40,025 bases of DNA from positions 62,001 through 102,025 of the forward strand of contig NW_026779444.1 in the NCBI RefSeq assembly GCF_030144855.1, written 5' to 3'. Positions 3,556-37,622 of this stretch are shown one piece after another. Every line of letters begins with the position of its first letter. Position 1 is the stretch's first letter. The stretch is from Hypanus sabinus (lineage: Eukaryota). A program made the translations under genes and the position numbers. The notes beneath the pieces were generated by a model. That model was not told the DNA's origin. It was given only the letters and a program-made list of their open reading frames with translations, and searched no databases.

Positions 3556-3936
3556 CTCCCAATGAGAGTGTCTCTGTGATGACTGGAACCAAGGGAGCTT
3601 CGGCCACGTTACCCTGTGTGTTCACACGGCCTCGGCAGAGCCTCACCGCACACACGGTGACGTGGATGAGGAAGGATCCCTACCGACACATCGTCACCTT
3701 CAGGCATATTCGAAATGGATCGTGGGCAGCGGAAAACGGAGTGATTCGGTACGAGCTCGTTGGGGACCCAGAGCTGGGAAACGCCTCGATCAGGATAAAG
3801 CAGCTGAGAGTGGAGGACAGTCACAGCTACCTGTGTCTGGCTGAGTTCAGGGAAAGGATTCATGATGATTCATCCTACATCAATCCCCCATATATCCATG
3901 TGATCCAGAGTGAGATCCAGCTGCAGGTCACCCCAG
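3556..3936 (+). CDS. Ig V-set domain exon (phase 1-1)
   Basis: Acceptor ctgtccttccctcag|CT and donor CCAG|gtaaga. Translation has B-strand LPC, C-strand TWM, GDPELGNASIRI and EDSHSYLC (D-x-x-x-Y-x-C), plus N-glycosylation sequons NES, NGS, NAS. ORF 3576..4064 is this exon reading on into the intron. Confidence 0.9.
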
Positions 3937-4307
3937 GTAAGAAACCATTGGCACATTCTGCAGGGAATGGGGAGGGTTTTAGGGGTGGGTGGGGGGTAGC
4001 CTGCTACCATTATCCTTTCTCTTATCAACCCCACCCCCGTGTTTATCTGTCTGTCCCCGAGTGAGATCTGACTGTAGATCAGACCCGGAAAAGAACCCGT
4101 CACCACATTCAAGTTCAAGTTTAATTGTCAATCAGCCACACGTGCATACAGCAAAACAAAACAGCGTTCCTCCAGGACAAAGTGTAAAGCAGAGTAGCAA
4201 CAGCACACAGTACACATCGTTACGATCGTAGAAAAGCATACAGTCACAAAAAGACATAATATAGCCCAAGTTCCTGAGTGGTCTGGATTGGAGCTGGATG
4301 GCAGATT

Positions 4308-4890
4308 GGATATTGTCCTGGTCCAGCTTGTCTCTCACTAAGTGAACACTGGGGGGCAGCACTGAGCAAAAGAGGAAGGCAGCACCGATGGGAGGGGCCT
4401 GTCCCCAACCCACGATGGACTCCAGCACGTCCACAGGGGACTCTGCTCTCTCCCACACCATCTCGGCATCTTCTGCAGTGTTCAGGGATGGGTCAGAACC
4501 TCCAGCACCCATTGTATTCTGTGTCCAGACTCCGGGGATGAATGTTATATCGGCCACTCCCAGCCTCTGCTGGTGATGAGTTCCATTTCCCCACCACATC
4601 TCCATCTCAGACGGTCCTTCACACAGGGTGGCCCCCAGACCTTCAACGGGCCCCCTGGTGGGGCCTTGCCTGAGCCTGGGAGGAATGAGTGGAGTTCTAA
4701 CGGAGGATCAGGAATCTTCCCAGAGAAGACACACACTCAGCATTTCAGGAAGAGCTTCTTCCTTTCTGCTGTCAGATTTCTGAGTGGACAATCAGAAAAG
4801 TGAGGACCAGCTCACTTTGTTTCCTTTCTTTCCCTCTTCTTGTGCTACTTACTTAATTTAAAATTCCAGATATAGATATATATTTCTTAT
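4308..4890 (+). mobile_element. Rex1/L2-type LINE 3' remnant, copy 2
   Basis: Near-identical to 338-900; both copies start at the same gatattgtcctggtcc. Confidence 0.6.
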
Positions 4891-5536
4891 TGTAAAGTAA
4901 AGAAACAAGAAAAAGAAAAGGGCCCATTCTCCTGAAACAGTCAAATGTGCAAACGTTGGAGCTCATTGGTAAGGTCGATCGTCCACCATCAATCTCCTCC
5001 GATCGTCGCTGACCTTCGGACCCTCACTCCAAGTCCATTCCATCCGGCGGTCTACCTTCTCTCTCCATTCGCGTCTTCTCTCCTCATCTCTCCCCAGCAG
5101 AAGTCTGTGAATTCCCGGCTCCCAGACACACAAGAAAGAACAACATCCCTCTATTCACGAACATGCCCCGTTATCTTTAGTCATATCCCAAGCATTGCTG
5201 CTCCAGAGAAACCATTACCTCAGCAGTGGAACATCACAGTGATGCCATTACATTAGCAGTGAAACCGTACAGCATGTTACAGTAATTTATAGTCTTTTTA
5301 TTAATATGTATTGCAATGTATTATCGTGTGGCGGGGTGGAGATGTATCTCTACCAAAGGAGGTGTAAGATGCTCCTTCCCTCCGCGAGCCTGCAGGTCAC
5401 CCTTGCCCACGGTGTAGCACCTGCTTAACCCCCCCACCCCTCCTTCCAGCCCGGAATCAGGGTGATCTGAAGCCATGGGAACAGATGGTGGATGTTCGTA
5501 TGAGCAACTGGTGCAGATCACAAGCCCTGGTTATAC

Positions 5537-6517
5537 ACATGACAAGATAGGCCAAAGCCAGCATGGTTTCCTGAAAGGAAACTCCTGCCTGACAAAACTA
5601 CTGCAATTCCTTGAGGAAATTACAAGCGGGGTAGACAAAGGAGATGCAGTAGTTGTGGTGTACTTGGATTTCCAGAAGGCCTTTGACAAGGTGTCACACA
5701 TGAGGCTGCTTAGCAAGATAAGAGCCCATGGAATTACAGGGAAGTTACTAGCATGGGTGGAGCATTGACTGGTCGGCAGAAAACAGAGAGTGGGAATAAA
5801 GGGATGCTATTCTGGCTGGCTGCTAGTTACCAGTGGAGTTCCACAGGGGTCGGTGTTAGGACTGCTCTTTTTACGATGTATGTCAATGATTTGGACGATG
5901 GGATTAATGGATTTGTGGCTAAATTTGCCAATGATACAAAGATCGGTGGAGAAGTGGGTAGTGTTAAAGATACAGGGGAATGGGCAAAGATATGGAAAAT
6001 GAAATACAATGTTGGAAAGTGTATTGTCATGCACTTAGGTGGGAGAAATAAACGGGCAGACTATTATTTAGATGGGGAGAGAATTCAAAATGCAGAGATG
6101 CAAAGGGACTTGGGATTCCTTATGCAGGATACCCTGAAGGTTAACCTCTAGGCTGAGTCAGTTGTGAAGAAGGTGAATGCAATGTTGCCATTCATTTCTA
6201 GAGGTATAGAATATAACAGCTGGGATGTGATGTTGAGGCTCTACAAGGCACTTGTGAGACCACATGGAGTATTGTGTGCAGTTCTGGGCTCCTTATTTTC
6301 GAGAGGATATACTGCCATTGGAGAGGGTTCAGAGAAGATTCACGAGAATGATTCCAGGAATGAGAGGGTTACTGTGTGAGGAACGTCTGGCAGCTCTTGG
6401 GCTGTATTCCCTGGAGTTCAGGAGAATGAGGGGGAGGGGTCTCATAGAAACATTCTGAATGTTAAAAGGCCTGAACAGATTAGAGATGGGAAAGTTATTT
6501 CCCATGTAGGGGATTCT
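5537..6517 (+). mobile_element. CR1 LINE (family C), 5' part of a copy split by the Gypsy element
   Basis: RT motifs (QHGFLKGNSCLTKL, VVYLDFQKAFDKV, KFANDTK) across frameshifted ORFs; sequence continues at 14161. Confidence 0.9.
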
Positions 6518-6936
6518 TGTTGCAATGAAATGTGACGAATGAGGCAAACCCAAGAGCAGGACACGGGCATGGAGGTTTAGTTAGGTTGCAGACGTGGACG
6601 TGACCGTTGGACAGCAAACAGGAGAAACCTTGACACAGAGCCTTGACACGGAGCCTAAACATGGAGCCTCGACTCAGAGAGATGGAGTCTCACAGCTAAA
6701 CTTAGAACAAATGGTTCTAAGCGGTCGGGAAACATTAGTTATCACACAGGAAAAAGACCAACGATCTGGCAACTGGGGTTTGTAACACCGGGGTTCTTGT
6801 ACTGCAGGTCCTGATGGAAACCAGGTGTGCCGTCATCAAAGAAAATTAGAAGCAATTGGGAAATTAACGGTCGCAACCATGGAACAAACAAAGGAAATTA
6901 GAGGAAACTAGGGAATAAACGATCAGGCCCATGATA
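6518..6936 (-). repeat. 3' LTR of the Gypsy element (about 419 bp)
   Basis: Runs from tgttgcaat at 6518 to tgata at 6936; aligns to 11252-11306 plus 13758-14160. Confidence 0.9.
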
Positions 6937-6951
6937 GTACCTCCCCTCCCC
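6937..6951 (-). promoter_or_regulatory. Polypurine tract of the Gypsy element
   Basis: Minus strand GGGGAGGGGAGGTAC directly abuts the 3' LTR. Confidence 0.85.
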
Positions 6952-9900
6952 ATTTCAGCAGTGAACCACCAGGCTTGTCCGGATGGTCCCGATGGAAATC
7001 ACAGATGAGGGAAGGGTCCAGGATGAAGGAGGGGGAATCCAGGAGTGTTCCCCCGGGCCGTATCCCTCTCAATCATCCAGGTACTGGAGACTCCTGCATC
7101 GGAGGCATGCATCCAGTATTCACTGTATGATGTACGCTGGGTGGTCGTCAATGACCCAGGCGGGTGGAGGGGGTTCGGCAGGAGGGCACAAAAGGCTGAC
7201 AGATCCAGGTTTCAATTGGGAGACGTGGAATGTAGGATGGACGTGCATGGATCCGGGCAGTTTGAGTCGGACCACCGAGAGGCTGATGACACTCAATCTC
7301 GAATGGTCCCAGGTAGAGAGGGGCGAGTTTCCTGGGTTCATTCTTGAGGGGGATGTCTTTAGAAGTGAGCCAAACCTTCTGCCCAGGCCGCTAGTTTGGT
7401 GCAGGAATCTGATGGCGATCGGCATTTGCGGTTGGCTGAGCGGAGCAGGGCCATATGTCCATCTTTCCAGATCTTGCGGCACCGGCGGAGATGGGCCTGA
7501 ACTGAAGGCACAGCAATATCATCTTCATGCGTGGAGAACAGAGGGGGTTGGTAACCGAGTGAGCATTCAAAGAGAGACGTTCCAGTGGCGGTGCTGACCC
7601 GGGAGTTGTGGGAGTACTCTACCCAAGCGAGATGGGTGCTCCAGGAAGACGGGTTGTTGGCAGTTATGCAGCGCAATGCTGCTTCCGAATCGTGGTTTGC
7701 TCGTTCTGTTTGACCGTTCATCTGTGGATGAAAGCCAGACAGCAGATTAACTGAGGCTCCAAGGGCTTGACAAAATATCTCCAGACTTGAGAGACGAATT
7801 GGGGACCCCGGTCAGAAATAATGTCAGAGGGAATCCCATGAAGACGGAAGACATGATGGACGAGAAGGTCGGCTGCTTCACGGGCTGTAGGGAGTTTGGG
7901 AAGGGCTATGAAGTGGACAGCTTGGGAGAAGCTGTCCACCACAGTGAGTACAGCAGTGTTCCCATGTGAAGGGGGTAGTCCCGTAATGAAATCCAGCGCA
8001 ATGTGACCAAGTGTGGCTAGGGACAGGTAGGGAACGAAACAACCCAGCAGGTGGTCGGTGGGAGGCTTTTCCACGGGCACAAACAGAACAGGCAGAGACG
8101 AAGGAACGGGTGTCAGCATCCATGGAGTGCCACCAGACATGTCCATTCAGAGGGGACAGAGTCCGATCGATTCCGGGACGGCAGGCGAAACGAGTAGTGT
8201 GCCCCCACTGGAGAACCTGTGACCGAACAGAATCGGGCACCAAGAGGCGATTGGAGGGTCCATTGCTTGGGTCAGGTTGAGTCCGTTTGGCCCCTTTGAC
8301 TATGGACTCGATCTCCCAGGTGAGGGCAGCCACTACACAGGATGGTGGAAGGATGGTCTCGGGGTTGAGAAGGGCCTCCTTGGAAACATATTGATGGGAG
8401 ATGGCATCGGACATCGAGCATCCATGTGAATCTGAACCGGCCAAAAAATAATGCCCAATGGGCTTGTTGGTAATTCAGGCGTTTGGCAGTTTGGATGTAC
8501 GCGAGGTTCTTGTGATCAGTCCAGATGATAAACAGATATTCTGCGCCCTCCAGCCGGTGCCTCCACTCCTCCAAAGCGAGTTTGACAGCCAGTAACTCCC
8601 GGATCACTACGTTGTAATTTCATTCGGCGGCGAGAAAAGAAGGCCCAGGGATGAAGTTCTGGTCTGGGCCGAAACGTTGGGAGAGGACCGCTCCCACCCC
8701 AGAATCAGAGGCGTCGACCTCCACAGTGAATTGGCGAGAGGGGTCAGGTTGGACCAGGATGGGAGTGGAGGTGAAACATCTCTTCAGCTCCGAGATGGCA
8801 GAGTCCGCTTCGGGGTCTCAGTGAAAAGGGGTCATAGGTGATGAGAGTCGAGTAAGGGGCGCTGCCGCCCGGCTGTAACCCCTGATGAAACGACGATAGA
8901 AGCTTGCAAACCCAAGTTTGCTTGAGCGTCGTGGGTCTTGGCCACTCCACCATCGCCCGGATCTTTTCGGGATCCACTCTCACTCGTCCGGTCTCGATGA
9001 TGTACCCTAAGAAGCTGACTGAGGGGACATGAAACTCTCACTTCTCAGCTTTAACGATACTTTGTTCTCCCAAAGCCTCTGCAGAACCTGACGGACATGG
9101 CGGGTGTGTTTCTGAAGACTGTGGGAGAAGATTAAGATGTCATTGAAATAAACAAACACAAAGCGGTTAATAAGGTCTCTAAAAGGACATCGTTTATCAG
9201 GGGTTGGAAAACAGCGGGGACATTGTTGAGGCCGAATGGCATGACCAGGTATTCGTAGTGACCAAGAGGGGTGTTAAATGCTGTTTTCCACTCATCTCCC
9301 TCCCTTATCCTGAGCAGATGGTAGGCACTTCGTAGGTCCAACTTGGAGAAGATGGTGGCTCCGTGAAGTGGTTGGAAAGCAGAGTTGATAAGGGGCAGTG
9401 GATATTTGTTCTTTATGGTTATACTATTTAGGCCTTGGGAGTCAATGCAGGGGCACAGTGAACTGCCTTTCTTCCCTAAAAAGAAACCTGCACCAACAGG
9501 GGTGGATGAGGGTCGGGTTATGCCCGCCGCGGGTGATTCATTTAGGTAAGCCTCCATTGATTCCCTTTCTGGCCGGGACAGGTTACACAGCCGACTGGTG
9601 GGTAGGGGGGCCCCGGGGAGAAGGTCAATAGCACAATGGTCAGGTCAGTGTGGAGGCAGGGAAAGGGCCCGTTGTTTACTAAACACTTGTCCCAGGTCGT
9701 GATACTCTGCTGGAACCTTGGATAAGTCAGGAGTTTCAGAGGCAGACGAGGTCACAGTGACTTTCACAGGGGATAGGGCCGATTGTAGACAAGTGGAGTG
9801 ATAGAACAGACTCCAGCTGGCTACCTTCCAGGTGGACCAGTCAATGTGGGGGTTATGGCAGCTTAACTGGGGTACCCAAGAACAATAGGAGCATGAGGAG

Positions 9901-11239
9901 AGGAAATTAGGTTAAATTGTACCTTTTCCTGATAGTTCCCAGAGAGAGTAAGAGACAGGGGATGGTGTGCAGTGTGTGACTCGGGCCAGTAGTCTACCAT
10001 CCAGTGCCTGGGCTTCCAAAGGGGTACTCAATGGCTCCCGAGGAATTCTGGCCCGGGAAGATATGTTTTCATCCAAAAGGTTTCCCTCAGTGCCAGAGTC
10101 CACTAGAGCGGACAGAGGCAGGGGCTGATGGTTTTAACGCAAAGTAGCTTGGATCTGCATCTGGGTTTGGGGGACAGAAGGGAATGTTGTCTGGCTCACC
10201 AAGATCCCCCTTTCTACTGGTGAGCCAACCCTTTTGGCCAAAGGGAACAGGTAGCACAGAAGTGGCCAGACTGGCTGCAATAGAGATAATCCCCTGCTCT
10301 TACTCTCTGGAGTTGTTCTGTGGGGGAAAGGCGGTTCAGTCCCAGCTGTTTGGTTCCTCTCACGGCATGGTGGAAACGGCCGGACTGGGAGCTATTCTAG
10401 GAGTGGGAGGAGAAGAGAGGCCTGTGCTGGTGGGAGATGGTACAGGGTGCCGTGGAGTAGCCAAAGGTGGTGGACGACCAGTTCTCTCCCTATGGCGTTC
10501 TCGAAGACGATTGTCCAACCTGGTTGCTAGGGAGATCAAGGAGTCCAGGCTGTCGGTGTCGTCTCTTGCCACCAATTCATCTTCCACCATTTCGCTGAGA
10601 CCATTGGAGTGCCTCATCGTTCCACCCTGAGTTCCACCCGCTAATGTCCGGAGTTTCAGAGAATACTCGGCAACACTGCGTGAGCCCTGACAGGAGTGAG
10701 GGGACATTTAGTGGCATCTTTACCACGGACGGGGTGGTCAAAGATCTTTCTCGTCTCTGTGATAAAGGTGGGGAATGAAGAGCAGATATCTGGCTGATTG
10801 TCCCAAACAGCTGTAGCCCCCGCTAAGGCACTTCCCCTCAACAACCCCATGATATAAGCTATCTTTGACTTGTCCGTGGAAGACATCAATGACTGCTGAT
10901 CGAACAGCAAGGAGCTTTGCAGAAGGAAGGCCCGGCACTTCCCCAAATCCCCAGCGGAGTGTTCTGGTTCAGGTCCGTGAGGCTCTCTTGGTGGGGGTGT
11001 TGCTGACATGTAGGGGGTTGCCACTACAGACTGTCTGGGTTGGTTAGACAGAGTTCCAGGAGTGGATGGGGTAAGATGAGTGGATACTCGGTCCACCTGG
11101 TCACCAATCTTCTTTACGTTCACAGACAGGGAATGGAGGTCCTCCATGACCTCCTGGAGAAGTTGATCGCAGACCCCGCAGGGATCCCTGGCTAGCGAGG
11201 GTTTGTTACAGGGTATTCATATCCACTGGGTCCATTGTG

Positions 11240-15264: not shown

Positions 15265-18085
15265 TTTATATCTGGTGAACTGAGACAATGGAGATGCCTG
15301 GCAGGATAGTGGAATTCTCCTCTTGTGGGATGTGGGAAGGCAGGGAGACCTCCAGTGTCCCCGACGACTACAACTGTGAGAAGTGGATCCAGCTGCAGCT
15401 TCTAACCATCCGCGTGAAGGAGTCGGAGCTGGAACTGGATGAACTCCAGATCATCCGGGCAGATGAGAGGGTGATGGATAGGTCACACAGAGAGGCAGTT
15501 ACACCCAAGGTGCAGGAGAGTACCCCTGTGGCCATCCCCTTCAAAGTGGTATACTGTCAGGGGGAGAGGAGTGGGTGGAGAGGAATGACCTAACAGAGGA
15601 AAGTCACAGTGGTTGGGTCTCTGGCACTGAGTCAGCCTCTGTGACTCAGAAGGGAAGGGGGGGGGGAGAAGAGGCACACTGTGGTAATGGGGGATTCATT
15701 AGGGGAACGGACAGGATGTTCTGTGGTGAGAACAAGATTCCTGGATGGTACTTTACCTCCTGGGAGCCAGGGTCCGGGATATCTCAGATCGGGTCCTCAG
15801 CATTCTGGAGTGGGAGGATGAGTTGCCAGAGGTCGTGAAGCATGTAGGTGCCAATGACATGGGTAGGATGAGTGACGAGGTTCTGCATGGGGAGTCAGGT
15901 TTTAAGTTGAAGGGCAGGAACTCCAGGGTTGTGATCTCAAGATTGCTACCTGTGCCACATGCTACTGAGGCTAGAGCTAGGAAGATTATACAGTTCAATA
16001 CGTGGCTAAGGATTTGGTGCAGGAGGAAGGGCATAAGATGTTTGGATCATTGGGCTCTCTTCCATGAAAGTGGACCTGTACAGAAGGGACCGTTTGCACC
16101 TGAACTGGAGGGGGATTAATATCCCTGTGGGAAGGTTTGTTAACACTGTATGGTGGGTTTAAACTGGAGTTGCAGGGGATGGGAACCAGAGTGCCAGAAC
16201 AGTTAGTGGAGAGGTTGTGGAGGCAGATGTTGATAAAACCTCAGACAAAGATAGATTGAGCAGGGTGTGACTTGTGTCCTGAGCTGAGTATATGTTGCAT
16301 CATTGTGGAAAGAGCTAAGGAACTGCAAATGTCATAAGACCCTGATGGAAATTGTATACAGACCCCCTGAACAGTAGTAAGGATGTGGTCTTCAAATTAC
16401 AACGGGAGAAAGAAAATGCATGTTACAATAATCACGGGAAATTTCAATGTGCTGGGAGATTGGGAAAATCAGCTTGGTGCTGGATTACAGGAGGAAAGTC
16501 TAGAGACTTAGGGGAAAGTGAAAGCTTTTAAAAATCAACAGAAGGCAACTAAAATGACATTATGAAGGTAAAGATGAAATATGAAAGTAAGCTAGCCAAT
16601 AATATTAAAGAATATACCAAAAGTTTCTTCAGATATTTGAAGTGTAAAGGAGAGGCGAGAGTGGATATTGGACCACTGCAAAATGATGCAGAGGAGGTGG
16701 TAATGAGGGACAATGAAATGGCGGATGAACTGAATTAGTATTTTGCGTCAGTCTTCACTCAGAAGATGGTATCAGTATGGTGGAAGTTCCAGGAGCCAGG
16801 GGTCATGAAGTGTGTGAAGTTACCATTACTAGAGAGAAGGTTCTTGCGAAACTGAAAAATCTGAAGGTAGATAAATCACCTGGACCCGATGCTGTACCTC
16901 CCAGGGTACTGAAAGGGGTGGCTGAAGGGATTGGGGAGGCGTTACTAATGATCTTTCAAGATTCACTAGATTCTGGAATGGTTCTGGAAGACGGGAAAAT
17001 TGCAAATGTCTCTCCAATATTCAAGAAGGGAGAGAGACAGAAGAAAGGAAACTATAGGCGAGTTAGTCTGATCTCAGTGGTTGGGAAGATGTTGGAGCTG
17101 ATTATTAAGGATGTGGTCTCACATCCTTAATACTTGGAGGCACAAGATAAAATGGGCTGTAGTCAGCATGGTTTCCTTAAGGGAAAATCTTGCCTGACAA
17201 ATCTGTTGGAATTCTTTGAAGAACTCACAAGCAGGATAGACAAAGGAGAATTAGTGAATGTTGTGAATTGGATTTCCAGAAGCTCTTTGACAAGGTGCCA
17301 CACGTGAGGCTGCTTTACAGGTGATGAGCCCATGGTATTCCAGGAAAGATACTCACTTGGATAAAGCAGGGGCTGACTGGCAGGAGACAAAGAGTGGGAA
17401 TAAAGGGAGCCCTTTCTGGCTGGCAGCCGGTGACTAGTGGTTTTCGACAGGGGTCTGTGTAGGGACCGATTCTTTTTACGTGATGTGTCAATGACTTGGA
17501 TAATGAAATTGATGGCTTTGTTGCAAAGTTTGCAGACAATATGAAGATATGAGGGGCAGGTAGTTTTGAGGAGGTAGAGAGGCTGCAGAAGGACTGAGAC
17601 AGATGAGGAGAATGGGCAAAGAAATAGCAGATGGAATAGTGTTGGGAAGTGTATGGTCATGCACTTTGGTAAAAGAAATGAAAGGATTGACTATTTTTTA
17701 AATGGAGAGAAGATACAAAAAAACTGAGGCAGAAAGTGATTTGGAAATGCTTGTGCAGGGTTCCCTAAAGGCTAACTTTCAGGTTGAGTCTGCGGTGAGC
17801 AAGGCAAATGCAATGTTCGCATTCATTTCAAGAGGAGAATATAAAAGCAAGGATGTTTTCACTAGAATTCAAAAGAATGAGGTGATTCCTTATTGAAACC
17901 TTTTGAATGGTGAAAGGCCTTGATGGAGTGGATGTGGAGAGGATGTTTCCTATGGTGGGAGAGTCTAAGACCAGAGGACACAAGCTCAGAATCAAGATGC
18001 ATACTTTTAGAACAGAGATGAGGAGCAATTTCTTTAGCCAGAGAATGGTGAATCAGTGGAATTCTTTGCCATAGACAGCTGTGAA
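15265..18085 (+). mobile_element. Long decayed CR1 copy with ORF1 remnant (SGNH/GDSL esterase-like) and ORF2 remnants
   Basis: GDSFIRGTDRMFC and VVKHVGANDMG esterase-like blocks (15690-15870), then endonuclease/RT fragments (LKVDKSPGPD, NYRRVSLISVVGKML, QHGFLKG) with deletions. Confidence 0.8.
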
Positions 18086-18693: not shown

Positions 18694-18783
18694 CCAACTC
18701 AAACCCTCTCATTTACGTGCTGGTCGTTCTGGTTCTCCTGCTCCTAGTCTGTGTCCTCCTGGCAGTCTCCTGGAAGAAGAAAG
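18694..18783 (+). CDS. Transmembrane exon (phase 1-1), no charged residue in the membrane span
   Basis: Acceptor ctctgtctcacag|CC and donor AAAG|gtgagc. Encodes (A)NSNPLIYVLVVLVLLLLVCVLLAVSWKKK: a hydrophobic run followed by a KKK stop-transfer; phase matches the V exon. Confidence 0.85.
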
Positions 18784-18841
18784 GTGAGCGGAGAACTGGC
18801 TGGCAAGTGAAGATGACTGTTCCTCTCCATGAAGGAGAGTG

Positions 18842-19272
18842 GCTGATGGGGGGAGAGTCGGTGGACTGTGGGAGGGGATTCAGTGGGTGATGGGGGAGAG
18901 TTGGTGGACTGTGGGAGGGGATTCAGTGGGTGATGGGGAGAGTTGGTGGACTGTGGGAGGGGATTCAGTGGGTGATGGGGAGAGTTGGTGGACTGTGGGA
19001 GGGGATTCAGTGGCTGATGGGGAGAGTTGGTGGACTGTGGGAGGGGATTCAGTGGCTGATGGGGAGAGTCGGTGGGTTGTGGGAGGGGATTCAGTGGGTG
19101 ATGGGAGAGAGTCATTGGGCTGTGGGAGGGGATTCAGTGGGTGATGGGGGAGAGTCAGTGAGCTGTGGGAGGGGATTCAGTGGGTGATGGGGGGAGAGTC
19201 ATTGGGCTGTGGGAGGGGATTCAGTGGGTGTGGGGAGAGTGTCTGTGGGATGTGAGAGGGGATTCAGTGGTG
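18842..19272. repeat. G-rich minisatellite, 10 units of 42-44 bp
   Basis: Unit gggtgatggggagagttggtggactgtgggaggggattcagt; attcagt recurs at 18878, 18921, 18963, 19005, 19047, 19089, 19132, 19175, 19219 and 19262. Confidence 0.95.
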
Positions 19273-22920: not shown

Positions 22921-23226
22921 GTCACGGTGAGCACCAGCACAACTCAACCCAGGAGTGAGCGAATGGCAGATTCTGTCACAGTGAGTGTTGGCGATGACTC
23001 AACCCAGGGGCAAAGGACCGGCAGACTCCGTCATTGTGAGTGATGACGACAACTGAACACAGGAGCAGAGGAACTTTGGACTCCGTCACGGTGAGCACTG
23101 ACGACAACTGAACCCAGGAGTGAGCGAATGGCAGACTCTGTCACAGTGAGTGCTGACAATGACTCAACCCAGGAGCGGAGGAACAGCAGACTCTGTCATG
23201 GTGAACGCCGGCGTGACTGAACCCAG
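22921..23226. repeat. 54-55-bp tandem repeat, about 6 units, with a 3-unit higher-order period
   Basis: Units start gtca at 22921, 22975, 23030, 23085, 23140 and 23195; units 1/4 and 2/5 are mutually closest. Confidence 0.9.
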
Positions 23227-23299
23227 GTGCTCCCATGAAGAGACGGAAACAAGGGATTAGACATAGGAATACCAACAGAGTATCAGAGAGACGATCGAG

Positions 23300-25030: not shown

Positions 25031-25963
25031 GTTCACTTCAGTTTCTCACCCATAAATCCAAGAGAGAACCTGTTCCCTTTTGAACCAAGATGCATAGTGT
25101 GATAAAGCTGGCCAGAAGTTAGAAGGGGAGGGGTTAAGATTGTTTCGACCCTAAATCTGTAATAGTAAAGGCATTCAACAGAGTATTGGATTGGCAGGAG
25201 ATAACGTCCAGGACCATGGGATAAGAGAAGGATCAATGGGATGATAGAATTGTCCTCCTAAGAGCTAGTATGGATTTGACGGGCTGAATCTCCTGCTGTA
25301 TGCTATCAGTGCTGCCCTCCAGTGTTCACTTGATGAAGACAAATGGGATTGCATTGGTCTGCATCTGCACTGGTGCACAAGCGTGAGATGAGGAACTGCT
25401 ACGTGCTTATTCTTACAGAAACATGGCTCCAGGACAGCATCCCATGCTACATCAATCTTCAGGCTTAACACTGAGGGACTTGTGCTGATATTAATTTGTG
25501 TTGTGTGTATGTTTTTTTTTGCTATTGTAACAACAGTATATGTGCTGTGTGTTTGCTATGTGTAGTGTGTGACGGTTGATGACTGTATTTTACACCTTGG
25601 CCCCAAAGGTTTCATTTGGCTGTATACATGTGTGTGGTTGAATGACAATTAAACCTGAATTTGACTGTGGTTCTCTGATTTGTGTTACAGTGCAAGACAG
25701 CAGCCCGTTGTATGATGAGATTGCCCCAAGCAGCAACAACAATGGTAAATGCCAGCACCTTACTGGTTGAGAGTTTTGACCTCGTTTGTAGCAACAAGAG
25801 TGTTGGGAACTGGAATTACACACAATCTGGTAGAGAAATTCAGCGGGTTGAACTGTTGTGTGGGGGAGAAATAAATTATCAATGGTTTGCAAGGTCTCAA
25901 TCTGAAATGTCAACAATTCTGTTCCTTTGTGTTGCTGAATTCCTGCTAACATTTGGACAATAG

Positions 25964-28212
25964 ACAATAGGTGCAGAAGTAGACCATTCAGCCCTTTGAA
26001 CCTGCACCGCCATTTTGAGATCATGGCTGATCAACTACTATCAATACCCGGTTCTTGCCTTGTCCCCATATCCCTTGATACCCCTATCCATAAGATACCT
26101 ATCTAGCTCCTTCTTGAAAGCATCCAGAGAATTGGCCTCCACTACCTTCCGAGGCAGTGCATTCCAGACCCCCATAACTCTCTGGGAGAAGAAGTTTTTC
26201 CTTAACTCTGTCCTAAATGACCTACCCCTTATTCTCAAACCATGCCCTCTGGTACTGGACTTTCCCAGCATCTGGAACATATTTTCTCCCTCTATCTTGT
26301 CCAATCCCTTAATAATCTTATATGCTGCAGTCAGATCCCCTCTCAATCTCCTTAATTCCAGGGTATACAAGCCCAGTCTCTCTAACCTCTCTGCGTAAGA
26401 CAGTCCAGACATCCCAGGAATTAACCTCGTGAATCTACGCTGCACTTCCTCTATAGCCAGGATGTCCTTCCTTAACCCTGGAGACCAAAACTGTAGACAA
26501 TACTCCAGGTGTGGTCTCACCAGGGCTCTGTACAAATGCAAGAGGATTTCCTTGCTCTTGTACTCCACTCCCTTTGTAATAAAGGCCAACATTCCATTAG
26601 CCTTCTTCACTGCCTGCTGCACTTGCTCATTCACCTTCAGTGACTGATGAACAAGGACTGCTAGATCTCTTTGTATTTCTCCCTTACCTAACTCTACACT
26701 GTTCAGATAATAATCTGCCTTCCTGTTCTTACTCCCAAAGTGGATAACCTCCCACTTATTCACATTAAACGTCATCTGCCAAGTATCTGCCCACTCACCT
26801 AGTCTAACCAAGTCACCCTGAATTCTCCTAACATCCTCATCATATGTCACACTGCCACTCAGCTTAGTATCATCAGCAAGTTTGCTGATGTTATTCTCAA
26901 TGCCTTCATCTAAATCATAAACAGATGTGGTCCCAATACCGAGCCCTGTGTCACCCCACTAGTCACCACCTGCCATTCCAAGAAACACCCATTCACTGCT
27001 ACCCTTTGCTTTCTATCTGTCAACCAGTTTTCTATCCATGTCAATATCTTCCCCCCAATGCCATGAGCTCTGATTTTACCCACCAATCTTCTATGTGGGA
27101 CCTTATCAAATGCCTTTTGAAAATCGAGGTACACTACATCCACTGGAACTCCCCAGCCTAACTTCCTGGTTACATCCTCGAAAAACTCCAACAGATTAGT
27201 CAAGCATGATTTACCCTTGGTAAATCCATGCTGGCGCGGCCCAATCCTATCACTGCTATCTAGATATGCCACTATTTCATCCTTAATAAAGGACTCTAGC
27301 ATCTTCCCCACCACCGATGTCAGGCTGACAGGTCGATAGCTCTCTGTTTTCTCCCTCTCTCCTTTCTTAAAAAGTGGGATAATATTAGGCATTCTCCAAT
27401 CCTCAGGAACTGATCCTGAATCTCAGGAACAATGGAAAATGATTACCAATGCATCCACAATTTCCAGGGCCACCTCCTTTAGTACCCTAGGATGCAGACC
27501 ATCTGGACCTGGGGATTTGTCAGCCTTCAGTCCCATCAGTCTTCTCATCACTGTTTCCTTCCTAATGTCAATCTGTTTCATTTCCTCTGTTACCCTATGT
27601 CCTTGGCCCATCCATACATCTAGGAGATTGCTTGTGTCTTCCTTAATGAAAACAGATTAAAGTACTCATTAAATTCTTCTGCCATTTCTCTGTTTCCCAT
27701 AACAATTTCACCCAATTCATTCTTCAAGGGCACAACATTGTTCTTAACTATCTTCTTTCTCTTCACATACCTAAAAAAGCTTTTGCTATCTTCCTTTATA
27801 TTCCTGGCTAGCTTGCGTTCGTACCTCATTTTTTCTCCCCGTATTGTCTTTTTAGTTAAGTTCTGTTGTTCCTTAAAAACTTCCCAATCATCTGTCCTCC
27901 CACTCACCTTAGCTCTGTCATACTTCCTTTTTTTTAATGCTATGCAACCTCTGACTTCCTTTGTCAACCATTGTGGCCCCTTTCCCCCCTTTGAATCCTT
28001 CCTTCTCTGGGGGATGAACTGATTTTGCACCTAGTGCATTATTCCCAAGAATACCTGCCATTGCTGTTCCACTGTCTTTTCTGCTAGGCTATCCTTCCAG
28101 TCAACTTTGGCCAGCTCCTCCCTCATGGCTCCATAGTTTCCCCTGTTCAACTGCAACACTGACACCTCTGAGCTGCCCTTATCCTTCTCAAATTGCAGAT
28201 AAAAACTTATCA
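25964..28212 (-). mobile_element. CR1 LINE (family B), decayed, within duplication copy 1
   Basis: 269-aa ORF2 C-terminus (26041..26850), RT fragment 26910..27392 and upstream fragments; tail aatagacaatag. Confidence 0.92.
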
Positions 28213-28874
28213 AAGTTCAAAGTAAATTCATTATCAAAGTACACATCTGTCACCATATACAACCCTAAGATCCATTTTCCTGCAGGCATACTCAATAAAT
28301 CAAATAACAATAATAGAATCAATGAAAGACCACACCAGCAAGGCAAACAACCAGTGTGTAAAGACAACAGGCTGTACAAATACAAAATGAAAGAAATAAT
28401 TATAGTAAATAAATAAGCAATATGTATCAAGAACACAAGATGAAGAGACCTTGAAAGTGAGTCAGTAGGTTGTGGGAATGGTTCAGTGATAGGGTGAGTG
28501 AAGTCATTCCCTTTCATTTTGTGTCTCTCTAACTTGTGTTCAGACTTGTTGGACAAAAGCGATTGTGCTGAGGTGCCATCCTGTAGAGTTCTGAACTGTC
28601 TCAGCTGAGCCTCTCTGCCCCAGTCCAGAGTGGAATGTTCCTGTGACATGGGGCAGTGTGTTTCCCACTGAACCCAGCACAAGTTCACCATAGTGTGGGC
28701 ACAGTCTGTCCTCCAGGAGATCAGGAGCGATCACTGCCTGCTGAGGAGGTTCTACATTAGTGGGTGGTGGAAGGGCTGGTGTGGGAGAAAGTTTGGCCAC
28801 AATATGGAAGGAGGGTGGAGAGTTTTTGATAAACACAAGAGATTCTGCAGATGCTGGAAGTCCAGAGGAACACA

Positions 28875-29680
28875 CACAAAATGCTGGAGAACACAGATGC
28901 CCCTCAGGGCTGTGTACTACGTCCCCTTCTTTACCCTCTGTATACCCATGACTGTGTCGTCACCCACAGCTCCAATCTGTAATTAAATTTGCTGATGACA
29001 CTACTCTGATTATCTCAAATAATAATGAGTTAGCCTACAGAGAGGAAGTCATCACCCTGACACAGTGGTGTCAAGAAAACAACCTCTCCCTCAACGTCAC
29101 AAAAACAAAGGAGCTGGTTGTGGACTACAGGAGGAATGGAGACGGGCTCAACCCTATTGACATCAATGAATCTGGGGTTGAGAGAGTGAACAGATTTAAT
29201 TTCCTCAGCATAAACATCACCAAGCATCTCACGTGGTCTGTACATACTGGCTGTGTGGTGAAAAAGGCACAACAGCACCTCTTTCACCTCAGACAGTTGA
29301 TGAAGTTTGGGATGGGACCACAAATCCTAAGAACTTTCTACAGGGGCACAATTGAGAGCATCCTGACTGACTTTATCACTGCCTGGTATGGGAACTGTAC
29401 CTTCCTCAATCACAGGACTCTGCAGAGAGTGGTGCAGACATCCCAGCGCATCTGTACAAAGGACACGAAGGATCATTGGAGACTCGAATCAACCCAACCA
29501 CAAACTGTTCCAGCTACTACCATCCAGGAAATGGTACCACAGCATAAAAGCCAGGACCAACAGGCTCCGGGACAGCTTCTTCCACCAGGCCTCAGACTGA
29601 TTAATTCATGCTGATACAATTGTATTTCTATATGATATTGACTGGCCGGTTCTACTTACTATAATTACTTGAAATTGCAC
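28875..29680 (+). mobile_element. Rex1-type LINE 3' part
   Basis: KFADDTTL, KTKELVVDYRR and TIESILTDFITAWYGN. Confidence 0.85.
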
Positions 29681-29681
29681 A

Positions 29682-32600
29682 GTCTGTGGCTGTTGATGAC
29701 TGAATTTTACACTTTGGCCCCAGAGGAACGCTGTTTCATTTGGCTGTATACTTGTGTAGTTGAATGACAATTGAACCTGAATTTGAACTTGATTCTCTGA
29801 TTTGTGTTACAGTGCAAGACAGCATCCTGTTGTATGACAACATTGCCCTGAGAAGCAACAACGAAGGTAAATGCCAGCACCTTACTGGTTGAGAGTTTTG
29901 ACCTTGTTTGTAGCAACAAGAGTGTTGGAACTGGAGTGACACACAATCTGGTAGAGAAATTCAGCGGTTTGAACTGTGCCTGTGGGGGAGAAATAAATTA
30001 TCAATGGTTTGCAAGGTCTCAATCCAAAATGTCAACAATTCTGTTCCTTTGTGTTGCTGAATTCCTGCTAACATTTGGACAATAGACAATAGGTGCAGAA
30101 GTAGACCGTTCAGACCTTTGAACCTGCACCGCCATTTTGAGATCATGGCTGATCAACTACTATCAATACCCGGTTCTTGCCTTGTCCCCATATCCCTTGA
30201 TACCCCTATCCATAAGATACCTATCTAGCTCCTTCTTGAAAGCATCCAGAGAATTGGCCTCCACTACCTTCCGAGGCAGTGCATTCCAGACCCCCACAAC
30301 TCTCTGGGAGAAGAAGTTTTTCCTTAACTCTGTCCTAAATGACCTACCCCTTATTCTCAAACCATGCCCTCTGGTACTGGACTTTCCCAGCATCTGGAAC
30401 ATATTTTCTCCCTCTATCTTGTCCAATCCCTTAATAATCTTATATGCTGCAGTCAGATCCCCTCTCAATCTCCTTAATTCCAGGGTATACAAGCCCAGTC
30501 TCTCTAACCTCTCTGCGTAAGACAGTCCAGACATCCCAGGAATTAACCTCGTGAATCTACGCTGCACTTCCTCTATAGCCAGGATGTCCTTCCTTAACCC
30601 TGGAGACCAAAACTGTAGACAATACTCCAGGTGTGGTCTCACCAGGGCTCTGTACAAATGCAAGAGGATTTCCTTGCTCTTGTACTCCACTCCCTTTGTA
30701 ATAAAGGCCAACATTCCATTAGCCTTCTTCACTGCCTGCTGCACTTGCTCATTCACCTTCAGTGACTGATGAACAAGGACTCCTAGATCTCTTTGTATTT
30801 CTCCCTTACCTAACTCTACACTGTTCAGATAATAATCTGCCTTCCTGTTCTTACTCCCAAAGTGGATAACTTCCCACTTATTCACATTAAACGTCATCTG
30901 CCAAGTATCTGCCCACTCACCTAGTCTAACCAAGTCACCCTGAATTCTCCTAACATCCTCATCACATGTCACACTGCCACTCAGCTTAGTATCATCAGCA
31001 AGTTTGCTGATGTTATTCTCAATGCCTTCATCTAAATCATAAACAGATGTGGTCCCAATACCGAGCCCTGTGGCACCCCACTAGTCACCACCTGCCATTC
31101 CAAGAAACACCCATTCACTGCTACCCTTTGCTTTCTATCTGTCAACCAGTTTTCTATCCATGTCAATATCTTCCCCCCAATGCCATGAGCTCTGATTTTA
31201 CCCACCAATCTTCTATGTGGGACCTTATCAAATGCCTTCTGAAAATCGAGGTACACTACATCCACTGGAACTCCCCAGCCTAACTTCCTGGTTACATCCT
31301 CGAAAAACTCCAACAGATTAGTCAAGCATGATTTACCCTTGGTAAATCCATGCTGGCTCGGCCCAACCCTATCACTGCTATCTAGATATGCCACTATTTC
31401 ATCCTTAATGAAGGACTCTAGCATCTTCCCCACCACCGATGTCAGGCTGACAGGTCGATAGCTCTCTGTTTTCTCCCTCTCTCCTTTCTTAAAAAGTGGG
31501 ATAATATTAGGCATTCTCCAATCCTCAGGAACTGATCCTGAATCTCAGGAACAATGGAAAATGATTACCAATGCATCCACAATTTCCAGGGCCACCTCCT
31601 TTAGTACCCTAGGATGCAGACCATCTGGACCTGGGGATTTGTCAGCCTTCAGTCCCATCAGTCTTCTCATCACTGTTTCCTTCCTAATGTCAATCTGTTT
31701 CATTTCCTCTGTTACCCTATGTCCTTGGCCCATCCATACATCTAGGAGATTGCTTGTGTCTTCCTTAATGAAAACAGATTAAAGTACTCATTAAATTCTT
31801 CTGCCATTTCTCTGTTTCCCATAACAATTTCACCCAATTCATTCTTCAAGGGCACAACATTGTTCTTAACTATCTTCTTTCTCTTCACATACCTAAAAAA
31901 GCTTTTGCTATCTTCCTTTATATTCCTGGCTAGCTTGCGTTCGTACCTCATTTTTTCTCCCCGTATTGTCTTTTTAGTTAAGTTCTGTTGTTCCTTAAAA
32001 ACTTCCCAATCATCTGTCCTCCCACTCACCTTAGCTCTGTCATACTTCCTTTTTTTTAATGCTATGCAACCTCTGACTTCCTTTGTCAACCATTGTGGCC
32101 CCTTTCCCCCCTTTGAATCCTTCCTTCTCTGGGGGATGAACTGATTTTGCACCTAGTGCATTATTCCCAAGAATACCTGCCATTGCTGTTCCACTGTCTT
32201 TTCTGCTAGGCTATCCTTCCAGTCAACTTTGGCCAGCTCCTCCCTCATGGCTCCATAGTTTCCCCTGTTCAACTGCAACACTGACACCTCTGAGCTGCCC
32301 TTATCCTTCTCAAATTGCAGATAAAAACTTATCAAAGTTCAAAGTAAATTCATTATCAAGGTACACATCTGTCACCATATACAACCCTAAGATCCATTTT
32401 CCTGCGGGCATACTCAATAAATCAAATAACAATAATAGAATCAATGAAAGACCACACCAGCAAGGCAAACAACCAGTGTGTAAAGACAACAGGCTGTACA
32501 AATACAAAATGAAAGAAATAATTATAGTAAATAAATAAGCAATAAGTATCAAGAACACAAGATGAAGAGACCTTGAAAGTGAGTCAGTAGGTTGTGGGAA

Positions 32601-33845
32601 TGGTTCAGTGATGGGGTGAGTGAAGTCATTCCCTTTCATTTTGTGTCTCTCTAACTTGTGTTCAGACTTGTTGGACAAAAGCGATTGTGCTGAGGTGCCA
32701 TCCTGTAGAGTTCTGAACCGTCTCAGCTGAGCCTCTCTGCCCCAGTCCAGAGTGGAATATTCCTGTGACATGGGGCAGTGTGTTTCCCACTGAACCCAGC
32801 ACAAGTTCACCATAGTGTGGGCACAGTCTGTCCTCCAGGAGATCAGGAGCGATCACTGCCTGCAGAGGAGGTTCTACATTAGTGGGTGGTGGAAGGGCTG
32901 GGGTGGGGGAAAGTTTGGCCACAATATGGAAGGAGGGTGGAGAGTTTTTGATAAACACAAGAGATTCTTCAGATGCTGGAAATCCAAAGGAACACACACA
33001 AAATGCTGGAGGACACAGATGCCCCTCAGGCCTGTGTACCAAGTCCCCTCCTTTACTCTCTGTATACCCATGACTGTTGCCGCCCACAGCTCCAATCTGC
33101 AATTAAATTTGCTGATGACACTACACTGATTATCTCAAATAATAAGTTAGCCTACAGAGAGGAAGTCATCACCCTGACACAGTGGTGTCAAGAAAAAAAC
33201 CTCTCCCTCAATGTCACAAAAACAAAGGAGCTGGTTGTGGATTACAGGAGGAATGGAGACAGGCTCAACCCTATTGACATCAATGGATCTGGGTTTGAGA
33301 GAGCGAACAGCTTTAATTTCCTCAGCATAAACATCACTGAGGATCTCATTTGGTCTGTACATACTGGCTCCGTGGCGAAAAAGCACAAAAGTGCCTCTTT
33401 CACCTCAGACAGCTGAGGATGTTTGGTATGGGCCCCCAAATCCTAAGAAATTTCTGTTGGGGCATAATTGAGAGCATCCTGACTGGCTGCACCACTGACT
33501 GGTATGGGAACTGTACTTCCCTCAATCGCAGGACTCTGCACAGAGTGGTGTCGACTGCCCAGCTCATCTGTAGATGTGAACTTCCCAGTATTCAGGAAAT
33601 TTAGAAAGACAGGTGTGTAAAAACAGCCCAAAGGATCATTGGGGACCCGAGTCATCCCAAACACAAACTGTTCCAGCTGCTACCATCTGGGAAATGGTAC
33701 CACAGCATAAAAGCCAGGAACAACAGGCTTCGGAACAGCTTCTTCCACCATGCCATCAGACTGATTAATTCATGCTGACACAACTGTACTTCTATGTTAT
33801 ATTGACTATCCTGTTGTACATATTATTATAAATTGAACATTGCTT
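29682..33845. repeat. Tandem segmental duplication, copy 2
   Basis: Same evidence as copy 1; the core is nearly identical and the flanks are clearly more diverged. Confidence 0.95.
30086..32334 (-). mobile_element. CR1 LINE (family B), decayed, within duplication copy 2
   Basis: Same breaks and ORF boundaries as 25964-28212. Confidence 0.92.
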
Positions 33846-34630: not shown

Positions 34631-34675
34631 CACAAGACAATGGCAGTGTGTACGACAGCGTTCTCTTCAATCGCA
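34631..34675 (+). CDS. Cytoplasmic exon with ITIM-like SVYDSV (phase 1-1)
   Basis: Acceptor gtgttttgtgacag|CA and donor CGCA|gtgaga (an in-phase alternative AGAG|gtcaac at 34684 is weaker); reads (A)QDNGSVYDSVLFNR. Confidence 0.7.
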
Positions 34676-35057
34676 GTGAGAGAGGTCAACTTCACTGCCT
34701 CATTTGCTGAGGAATTTTGTCTAATTTGTATTCAGAACTTAAGCAGATGATCAACAGAACCTTTCGATTTTCTTAAAGGTGCTGGACAGTTGCCAGTCAG
34801 TGATTGAGAATATCATATTTACACTCAATGGCCACTTTATTAGGTACACCTGTACACCTGACTCAGTACTTTGATTTATGAAGGCTATCGTACAAAACTC
34901 TTTTGACAACACTATGTACCTGTGGACACCACTCTCCAAGGTCTTGTACAGTCTGTAGGTAGTTTAAGGCTCCATATAAATGTGAGCTGCTAGGTGTTGT
35001 AATATTTCTTGCTTTCAGACATTAGTCGATTCGGACTAATCACTCTCTTCCTTACAG

Positions 35058-35135
35058 AGCAGTCAGATTCCTTCACTTATGCCAGCATTTCGACAGGACT
35101 TGGGAAGGCAAGAAAACCTCAAACTGAAGATCAAG
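35058..35135 (+). CDS. Cytoplasmic tyrosine-motif exon A, FTYASI (78 nt, phase 1-1)
   Basis: Acceptor ctctcttccttacag|AG and donor CAAG|gtacaa; reads QSDSFTYASISTGLGKARKPQTEDQ. An in-frame upstream acceptor at 35018/35019 would add 13 aa. Confidence 0.8.
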
Positions 35136-35214
35136 GTACAATCTCCATTTACCGTTCATCATTTCTCAGACTGCCTGCTGACCATCGAATACTGAAAACC
35201 TAGATAGAGCATAA

Positions 35215-35545: not shown

Positions 35546-35604
35546 TTTTTCTTTAAACATTTTATCTTTACACTTAACCTATGGCCTCTAGTTCTAGTCT
35601 CATA

Positions 35605-36195: not shown

Positions 36196-36249
36196 TGCAA
36201 CTCCTGACTTCGATTTACTGTCGGTTCAGACGAATCCCTCTCCTTACAG

Positions 36250-36327
36250 AGCAGCCAGATTCCTGCACTTATGCCACTATTTTGATGAGAGGTGAGAAGG
36301 CAAGCAAACCACAAGCTGAAGATCAAG
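36250..36327 (+). CDS. Cytoplasmic tyrosine-motif exon B, CTYATI (78 nt, phase 1-1; paralog of exon A)
   Basis: Acceptor ccctctccttacag|AG and donor CAAG|gtacag; reads QPDSCTYATILMRGEKASKPQAEDQ; 64/78 nt identical to exon A. An internal in-frame donor lies at 36291/36292. Confidence 0.8.
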
Positions 36328-36579
36328 GTACAGTCTCCGCTTACCTTTCACCATTTCTTGGATCACTTCGAGGTCATCCTGCTGACTAACAGAAAGTTCT
36401 TCTTCAATTCCAGGTGGGCAGAAGCAGGAAGCTGGACCTCCAGGTGAGGCTTTCTCTCAAGGAATTCTTGAAAATGATCTCCTTCAACTGCTCCATTCAC
36501 CCGTCCCTTCCACTCACAGGGTGTGTGTCTGGCTGCCGCTAGGTCCTGCAGTCCACCTCAGTGAGACTGGAGGGAAGGA

Positions 36580-36985
36580 TTGGAGAAGCAATGAAGAGTG
36601 GGAGAGGAGAGGGGAGGGAGAATGAAAGAGAGGGAGGGGAAAGGGGAGAGAGGGTGAGGGAGGGGAAAGGGAATAAAAGAGAGTGAGGAGGAGGGACGAA
36701 TGAGAAAGAGAAGGGGGTGAAGGAAAGGCATAAGGGAAGTGGGAGAGAGAGAGGGGGACTGAGTGGGGAAGAGAGAGAGGGAGGGGTAGAGAGAGGAAGG
36801 GTGTGAGAGCAGGGTGAAGGGAGAGGTGGAGAGAATGGTAGGAAGGGAGAGAGTGGTGGAAGGGGGAAATGGATGGAGCAATGGAAGGAGAGAGGGAGGG
36901 GAAGGGGGAAAATTGAGGGAGGAGGAATGAGGAGCAGGTGGGGAGAGGGAGAAAAAGGAAGGGGAGGGGGAAGAAGAGGAGGGAA
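36580..36985. repeat. Polypurine (GA-rich) low-complexity tract
   Basis: About 400 bp made almost entirely of G and A on the plus strand. Confidence 0.9.
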
Positions 36986-37590
36986 GCAAACTTCGTTTGC
37001 TCTTGTTGCACAGGTGAGGACACTAGCTAGGAAACAGTGGCGTACGAGACAGGAATCGGGAATGGTGAGCTGACTGCACAGGCCCTTTGAGCTTCCTGTT
37101 CCTCAGAGAGGCCTGGCCAGTCTCCGACTCAGATTCACGTATTTATCACACATACATCGAAACATACAGTGAAATGTCATTTGCGTAAAGAACCAACACA
37201 ACACAAGGATGTGCCGGGTGCAGCCCGCAAGTGTCACCACACGTTCTGGCACCAAAATCGCACACCCACAATATTCAGCAGAACAACACAAGCAACAAGA
37301 GAACAACAACCATGAAAGAAACAAGCACTGCATACAAGCCCTTTCCTCCCTCTCACCCCATCCCCACACTGTCAGGCTTCCAACCCTGGGATAGACCACC
37401 TCCGGGCCTTCAGCTGCCAGTGGGCTCACAGACATCAGGTCTTGGATTTCTAGACATGCCAACCCTGGGCCTTAACTTCTGGGTAGGCCAACTTCAGTCT
37501 TCAATCCTCAGTCTTCAAACTTCAGTCTTCAATCCTCAGCCTTCAATCTTCCCTCACTGTCTGAACTAATATCTGATTTTTGTGTTTCAG

Positions 37591-37622
37591 ATGTGATCTA
37601 TGCGGAGGTGGTGAAGAAATAG
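37591..37622 (+). CDS. Terminal coding exon with canonical ITIM VIYAEV
   Basis: Acceptor atttttgtgtttcag|AT with CTAAT at 37566-37570 as a plausible branch point; reads (D)VIYAEVVKK then TAG at 37620-37622. I saw no AATAAA between the stop and the window end. Confidence 0.85.

Follow-up and report, generated by a model that had tools for sequence, protein, structure and literature searches.

A probable 3' part of an inhibitory-type receptor gene of a Siglec-15-like multigene family in the stingray Hypanus sabinus

A series of short open exons scattered through repeat-rich DNA can represent a working gene, the remains of one, or pieces of two different transcripts. This question is raised by a stretch of 40,025 nucleotides from Hypanus sabinus (assembly GCF_030144855.1, contig NW_026779444.1, positions 62,001 to 102,025 of the forward strand; hereafter the window), in which a preliminary description, made from the letters alone, had proposed a gene for an inhibitory receptor of the immunoglobulin superfamily (IgSF) between positions 3556 and 37622. 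The analysis described here indicates that this region, on the forward strand, is probably the 3' part of a stingray inhibitory-type receptor gene that belongs to an elasmobranch Siglec-15-like multigene family. The window gene is real and apparently intact over its 3' two-thirds, and it is an ordinary gene of a known kind and no new system.

Exons and reading frame

The exon borders were set on AG/GT after tblastn of the best V-domain homologues against the window. Family proteins, cited below by P numbers, matched a V exon (E 1e-68), a transmembrane (TM) exon (3e-11) and eight small exons (2e-13 for tail exons), in order and on the forward strand, and this homology, as judged from the alignments, is far beyond chance. 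The resulting model has ten exons, namely the final one of the ectodomain, one for the TM segment and eight for the cytoplasmic part, with 890 nt and 296 open codons that make up 2.6% of the gene span (Table 1). All borders are AG/GT and compatible in phase, every exon being read from phase 1 to phase 1 except C1 (1 to 2) and C2 (2 to 1), and the nine donors of the supported model are all GT with a purine at +3 (9/9). The last exon, Y6, is 90% identical over 10 residues to the C-termini of P0001 and P0013, a match with an E-value of only about 1 when taken alone, and the last exon of a thorny-skate gene provides a collinear DNA match at E 7e-6. A diverged third copy of the 54-nt exon (Y3?) has a GTCAAC donor with C at +3 and is found in none of the homologue models examined; it is probably either a pseudo-exon or decayed copy, or a rarely used cassette.

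Much of what the preliminary description had listed is present, including the V-set exon, the five-residue stalk followed by an uncharged TM segment and KKK (recovered in a hydropathy scan), the terminal VIYAEVVKK before a TAG stop, and AG/GT borders in compatible phases at all exons. Its open join of eight exons and 797 nt can be reproduced, but the exon set was incomplete, C1 and C2 having been overlooked. The 797 nt are the supported 890-nt model minus these two exons, and because C1 and C2 together measure 93 nt, skipping both is frame-neutral and the join remained open. It had counted four YxxV/I motifs, where either 797-nt join contains five tyrosine motifs.

The exon series is repeated in the gene of the thorny skate, Amblyraja radiata (locus L001, protein P0174), which extends over 35 kb and has a leader, D1, D2 and TM exon, two juxtamembrane exons equivalent to C1 and C2, 78-nt tyrosine exons each with a 30-nt GGQK-type spacer, and a last exon encoding VIYAAV. 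Splice-site sequences are alike between the two genes. This was the only relative locus compared at the DNA level, and it is too diverged for an estimate of synonymous divergence; in the blastn comparison, collinear single-copy matches are limited to V2, Y4 (and its paralogue), C3 and Y6, and the remainder is multi-copy repeat.

Table 1. Exons of the window gene and domains of the retroelement in its longest intron (window positions; a slash marks the splice border)
Feature	Positions	Strand	Details
V2, membrane-proximal V-set Ig domain	3556-3936	+	381 nt, phase 1 to 1; acceptor ...ccctcag/, donor /gtaaga
TM exon: stalk ANSNP, uncharged 22-residue helix, KKK	18694-18783	+	90 nt, phase 1 to 1; acceptor ...tctcacag/, donor /gtgagc
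C1, juxtamembrane exon	19385-19424	+	40 nt, phase 1 to 2; ...cttcag/, /gtaagg; P0013 residues 124-137, 86% (tblastn)
C2, cytoplasmic exon	20397-20449	+	53 nt, phase 2 to 1; ...caacag/, /gtactg; 83-94% to many family members (tblastn)
Y1, phase-1 cassette exon, PLYDEI	25691-25744	+	54 nt; ...gttacag/, /gtaaat; 84% to P0013 residues 154-172
Y2, phase-1 cassette exon, LLYDNI	29813-29866	+	54 nt; splice sites as Y1; tblastn to P0013 residues 173-197
Y3?, diverged third copy of the 54-nt exon, SVYDSV	34631-34684	+	open, phase 1; donor /gtcaac
Y4, phase-1 exon, FTYASI	35058-35135	+	78 nt; 81-93% to P0001 and P0163; collinear DNA match to skate exon
Y5, phase-1 exon, CTYATI, paralogue of Y4	36250-36327	+	78 nt; 96% to P0001 residues 337-363, E 2e-13
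C3, phase-1 spacer exon, GGQKQEAGPP	36414-36443	+	30 nt; 100% to P0163 residues 366-375; collinear skate DNA match
Y6, last coding exon, VIYAEV, KK	37591-37622	+	32 nt; acceptor ...gtgtttcag/; TAG at 37620-37622
Integrase H2C2	7878-8444	-	Ty3/Gypsy-type element
Reverse transcriptase	9132-9557	-	Ty3/Gypsy-type element
gag-like DUF4939	10656-11147	-	Ty3/Gypsy-type element

The membrane-proximal V domain and its relatives

In its phase-1 frame, V2 translates into a 127-residue domain that matches the Pfam V-set profile PF07686 with 46.5 bits (gathering cut-off 26, E 4.7e-12). It carries the canonical Cys20, Trp36 and Cys93, three N-x-S sites, and only the two canonical cysteines, with no extra Cys pair. 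The AlphaFold2 model of V2 (pLDDT 85) has nine strands in a V-type Ig fold, and its top Foldseek matches are all IgV domains at probability 1.00; the Siglec-15 V domain has the highest template-modelling score by query (0.72) among the matches listed, with no decisive separation from other IgV domains, and the predicted structure is a generic IgV. Among solved sequences in the PDB, the best match is the IgV domain of CD276/B7-H3 (E 2e-11, summed over two repeats); the Siglec-15 V domain is matched at 4e-10 and pIgR at 1e-6. The likeness to CD276 is confined to the generic V-set core at about 30% identity, and the architecture and tail of that protein are unrelated to those of the window gene.

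A HMMER search with V2 recovered 44 representative proteins with E-values of 1e-10 or less, the top one being 88% identical, and 18 representatives looked up by name were mostly elasmobranch models called 'uncharacterized protein', with more distant relatives in lungfish, gar ('SIG15'), a teleost (Girardinichthys) and hagfish. A second homologue search, at E<=1e-5, gave 47 proteins, every one of them from a ray or a skate; a few carry the automatic names Siglec-15, sialoadhesin-like or HAVCR1-like. Members occur in the ray and skate genera Hemitrygon, Hypanus, Mobula, Narcine, Pristis, Leucoraja, Amblyraja and Rhinoraja, and in the sharks Heptranchias and Mustelus. In full-length relatives a signal peptide and D1 precede the D2 V-set domains, of which there is at least one, and these are joined by a very short stalk to the TM segment and tail. 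Identity between V2 and the second V domain in Hemitrygon akajei models is 88-91%. Two H. akajei models bear two V2 domains each, and it is with the membrane-proximal one of these that the window's V2 clusters in the D2 tree. Across 34 D2 domains from four batoid orders the mean column identity is 66%, the FG loop varies in length, and C20, W36 and Y91-L-C93 show little or no variation; every family-conserved residue is intact in the window copy. By these comparisons, V2 is the second, membrane-proximal domain type of the family, distinct from D1.

It is D1 that connects the family to a known receptor. The V domain of human Siglec-15 (7ZOZ) and the D1 of one full-length family protein align at a domain E-value of 2e-13. 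LPCTFT and an additional pair of cysteines are common to both, as is the arginine in CRVE, and this sialic-acid arginine is kept in 27 of 34 D1 domains. Thus, although the preliminary description held that the receptor could not be assigned to a named family, it can be placed through the Siglec-15-like N-terminal domain of its relatives. Other points of likeness are a sister class with a TM lysine and the name 'Siglec-15' that NCBI has given to some members. There are also differences. The second domain of Siglec-15 is a C2-set domain, whereas that of the family is V-set and repeatable, and the YLCLAEF of V2 aligns with YFCRVEF of Siglec-15, so that Leu, invariant in D2, takes the place of the essential Arg. 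In addition, Siglec-15 has a DAP12-type lysine in its TM segment, whereas the window gene has an uncharged TM segment and a long tyrosine-bearing tail.

Within RefSeq, the models XP_072903757 of H. akajei, LOC132396475 of H. sabinus, LOC116971354 of A. radiata and LOC144495190 of Mustelus asterias belong to the same family and have the same exon series, and none of the ray, skate and shark models is identical to the window gene (89% over TM segment and tail, 88-91% over V2). The family is therefore already predicted in RefSeq, albeit uncharacterised, and the window gene is one further member of it. The proposal of an inhibitory-type, lineage-specific and perhaps uncharacterised IgSF family of cartilaginous fish agrees with this result, the closest proteins all being 'uncharacterized' models from rays, skates and sharks. 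The epithet 'cryptic', in turn, is true of the window copy only, since related species have annotated paralogues and orthologues. Full-text searches found no literature on this receptor family. The modular domain immune-type receptors (MDIR) known from a skate are a multigene IgSF family with activating and inhibitory members and domains described as CD300/TREM/pIgR-like (PMC3031540); as far as this description of MDIR goes, V2 may differ from them, with a pIgR match that is weaker than that to Siglec-15 and no extra Cys pair. A database study that analysed the evolution of SHP-2 reports PD-1 in cartilaginous fish (PMC12151841).

An alternative possibility is that V2 and the tail never meet in one messenger, V2 being an exon of some gene further upstream, such as an activating one, and the TM and tail exons belonging to another transcript. 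The unusually long intron between V2 and the TM exon is consistent with this, as is the fact that V2 is as near to the D2 of the activating model P0160 (91%, the nearest of all) as to inhibitory D2 domains (88%). However, the closest models join the same V2 type directly to the same TM exon, at a junction of VTP or RP followed by ANSN, and neither the interval between V2 and the TM exon nor the rest of the window holds a lysine-type TM exon, a leader or a D1. Two other matches in the window touch only the odd ends of P0181, an H. sabinus model named 'HAVCR1-like'. One at 1449-1487 (13/13 residues) matches its C-terminus and one at 15745-15843 (58% over 33 residues) its N-terminus. Both were rejected as exons, as such ends are found in no other member of the family, and both are read as transposon-derived, so the ends of P0181 are probably mis-annotated repeat. 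We therefore regard two separate transcripts as very unlikely.

Paired classes and the tyrosine tail

The family models retrieved fall into two classes by TM segment, isoforms of one gene being counted separately. The uncharged-TM class has about 29 models, 28 of which have tails of 83-252 residues with 2-7 YxxI/V/L motifs, and the TM-lysine class has about 26, with a conserved IPLGLK-type TM segment and tails that are mostly 6-25 residues long and almost devoid of tyrosine motifs. Both classes are found in the same species. In the D2 tree they interleave (8 label changes, where shuffled labels give 9.5), and one activating and one inhibitory D2 of the little skate are almost identical. Near-identical ectodomains carried either on an ITIM tail (immunoreceptor tyrosine-based inhibitory motif) or on a charged TM segment with a short tail are equally a feature of CD33-related Siglecs, SIRP, CD300, PILR, LILR/KIR and NITR. 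As judged from these models, then, the family shows the paired-receptor pattern, with the window gene in the uncharged-TM, tyrosine-tail class, and the charged-TM activating partners that had been predicted do exist among its relatives. When the lysine-type TM segment and tail were searched against PDB sequences, there was no match, and the likeness to the TM segment of Siglec-15 is limited to an LGxK pattern visible in alignment.

The TM helix of the window gene is the only convincing one followed by KKK in a hydropathy scan of the forward strand. Its 22 residues, from LIYV to AVSW, include no K, R, D or E, and the exon is 90-93% identical over 30 residues to P0001 and P0013 (E 2e-11 to 3e-11) and, by eye, identical to P0169. 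The profile and protein searches suggested in the preliminary description confirmed the V-set and matched TM segment and tail to H. akajei XP_072903757 (P0154) with 89% identity over 169 residues, no gap and E 2.5e-104 in blastp.

The tail itself has 139 residues and five tyrosines, all in YxxI/V motifs in the order PLYDEI, LLYDNI, FTYASI, CTYATI and VIYAEV, at distances of 18, 18, 26 and 32 residues from one tyrosine to the next. When the strict ITIM consensus (S/I/V/L)xYxx(I/V/L) is applied, LLYDNI of Y2 and VIYAEV of Y6 conform to it (SVYDSV would also fit, and sits in the doubtful Y3?). The label 'ITIM-rich' was thus justified in kind but overstated, as it applies to 2/5 motifs. In having a membrane-distal ITIM the tail resembles those of paired IgSF receptors such as the CD33-related Siglecs, and the YAS(I/L) motifs recall the xHYASL motif of the CD33 type. 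The family differs from these receptors in its V-V(n) ectodomain without C2, in a tail built of phase-1 mini-exons, and in most motifs being non-canonical at -2.

If the window copy is expressed, the tail would be expected to work as in other inhibitory receptors. The receptor would cluster once its ectodomain, probably by way of the upstream D1, binds a ligand, and Src-family kinases would then phosphorylate the tail tyrosines. The phosphorylated ITIMs would recruit SH2 phosphatases (SHP-1, SHP-2 or SHIP), and these in turn would damp signalling through immunoreceptor tyrosine-based activation motifs (ITAM) by activating receptors, including the TM-lysine sisters with their near-identical ectodomains. 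By analogy with such receptors, we infer that tail phosphorylation recruits these phosphatases and opposes ITAM signalling.

It is also conceivable that the tail is not purely inhibitory, the YxxI/V motifs serving mainly as AP-2 endocytosis signals or the tail acting as a splice-dependent switch or in an ITAM-like manner, and this could coexist with an inhibitory-type receptor. All five tyrosines fit YxxΦ while only two of the five motifs are strict ITIMs, Siglecs are endocytic receptors, relatives have cassette-exon isoforms, and Y5 contains an internal GTGAGA donor. As far as sequence goes, endocytosis through the YxxΦ motifs is equally compatible with the tail as inhibition is. On the other side, 10/10 aligned tails from sharks to rays have a C-terminal (V/A)xY(A/S/I)x(V/A)V-type motif, spacings of 26 and 32 residues are typical for the docking of phosphatases with tandem SH2 domains, and the TM-lysine sister class points to activating/inhibitory pairing. 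A tail with chiefly another function is thus rather doubtful, and an inhibitory-type tail remains the preferred interpretation.

The tail is modular in construction. Every tyrosine motif is encoded by a separate, symmetric phase-1 exon, and therefore skipping or duplication alters the number of motifs without loss of frame. Isoforms in RefSeq from H. akajei and Leucoraja erinacea differ by exactly these cassette exons; those of H. akajei hold one, the other or both of the YDxI-type 54-nt exons, and the isoform P0013 skips the C3 spacer. The last three motifs (Y4, Y5 and Y6) are conserved from sharks to rays, and within the ten-tail alignment the YDxI exons are confined to stingray and manta sequences. 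The window gene has two YDxI cassettes and a decayed third copy, and its stop lies one codon earlier than in most relatives. In the thorny skate, one 78-nt CTYASI exon and one 30-nt GGQK spacer exon form a unit of which there are two tandem copies (37183-41200 of L001), which indicates that the tail became longer when this pair of exons was duplicated; the first spacer is absent from the stingray window.

Two other splicing features were seen. The internal in-frame GT of Y5 (36282-36297, AGAG/GTGAGA) is used by no homologue model; were it used with C3 skipped, the last two tyrosines would end up close together. Read-through of the TM-exon donor (18784-18851) gives GERRTGWQVKM..., which resembles the C-terminus of H. 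akajei model P0171, and the 52-residue stretch of TM segment plus read-through is 88% identical to that model (leader, D1, D2, TM segment and a 31-residue tail without tyrosine). Intron retention after the TM exon may thus give a tail-less isoform.

Completeness, introns and setting of the gene

V2 is entered in phase 1, with a junction codon that would be GCT (Ala). This agrees with relatives, in which V2 follows D1 (...SVR/AP...) or another V2 (...VTP/AP...). Since no leader or D1 exon precedes V2 within the window, the gene begins upstream and is not contained in 3556-37622, the extent originally claimed for it. The full gene likely has the structure leader-V1-V2(n)-V2-TM-tail, of which the 5' part would lie beyond the window.

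Several observations weigh against this assignment and should be considered together. No leader, D1 or lysine-type TM exon was detected in the window by tblastn at word size 2 with an E-value limit of 50, and none in 1-3555; the linkage to upstream exons rests on homologue architecture. Likewise, no AATAAA or ATTAAA occurs within 2.4 kb 3' of the stop (37623-40025), a short-query protein search admitting short proteins found no transcript-derived protein for the window copy and returned RefSeq models only, and several H. akajei models of the inhibitory class have no leader and start at an internal Met, so some family copies may be incomplete or mis-modelled. Finally, PLYDEI, FTYASI and CTYATI are off the ITIM consensus, with P, F and C at position -2.

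With the exception of the motifs, these same points, together with the 14.8-kb intron between V2 and the TM exon that is occupied by a Ty3/Gypsy element, would be expected of an unexpressed relic, in which a V2 exon and a TM/tail module were left behind by cluster duplications with no leader or D1 of their own and no protein is made. However, a relic is difficult to reconcile with ten exons that are all open, with canonical splice sites and a purine at +3 of every donor, or with family-conserved V2 residues and conserved tyrosine motifs that are all intact. The missing D1 is also less telling than it seems. In the thorny-skate gene, D1 is separated from the leader by an intron of about 10 kb and from D2 by one of about 5 kb, and a D1 is thus not expected within the 3.5 kb upstream of V2. 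For these reasons, a relic appears unlikely, and the 3' part of an intact receptor gene is the better account of the locus.

The introns are indeed 'buried in transposon debris', as had been stated, with about two-thirds of their bases repetitive and open reading frames (ORFs) for reverse transcriptase and integrase among them. The retroelement between V2 and the TM exon is of the Ty3/Gypsy type and lies on the reverse strand at 7718-11147, with all of its ORFs fragmented. Further downstream, a 4.1-kb tandem duplication at 25564-33800, with fragments of a reverse transcriptase from a long interspersed nuclear element (LINE) inside, bears Y1 in its first copy and Y2 in its second. The two copies are 97.9% identical over 3.4 kb and >99% identical in the LINE part, compared with about 87% in the first ~300 bp and 81% (44/54) in the 54-nt exon; the exon-proximal part is either older or was converted from a paralogue. 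Three simple tandem repeats were also noted. The one at 22939-23227, whose 55/110-bp units include GTGAGT-like sequences, was considered as a source of mini-exons and rejected, as it has no homology to family proteins. A 42-bp repeat of 10 copies (18838-19270) lies directly 3' of the TM exon and matches no family protein, and a 26-bp repeat of about 32 copies (39202-40024) closes the window. No other Ig exon was found in the window by tblastn with family and related proteins.

Taken together, these features allow a broader but tentative proposal, which we consider quite possible without giving it the weight of the gene assignment itself. The family may be an undescribed paired-receptor system of elasmobranchs that derives from Siglec-15 and represents a counterpart of the CD33-related Siglecs that arose independently, in which C2 was replaced by one to three V-set domains with a hypervariable FG loop, and in which duplicated, alternatively spliced phase-1 cassettes of one tyrosine each would set signalling strength. 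The expansion would have taken place in sharks and especially in rays, and the 4.1-kb tandem repeat represents a cassette duplication in the window.

Alone, the window gene is an ordinary immune-receptor gene, and its value lies at the level of the family. Cartilaginous fishes, the oldest jawed vertebrates, possess paired receptors that form a multigene family and are based on a Siglec-15-like lectin domain, which bears on when inhibitory Siglec-type signalling arose and on whether expansions of the CD33 type recur. The tail with one exon per tyrosine also provides a natural example of how the number of ITIMs can evolve by exon duplication and skipping.

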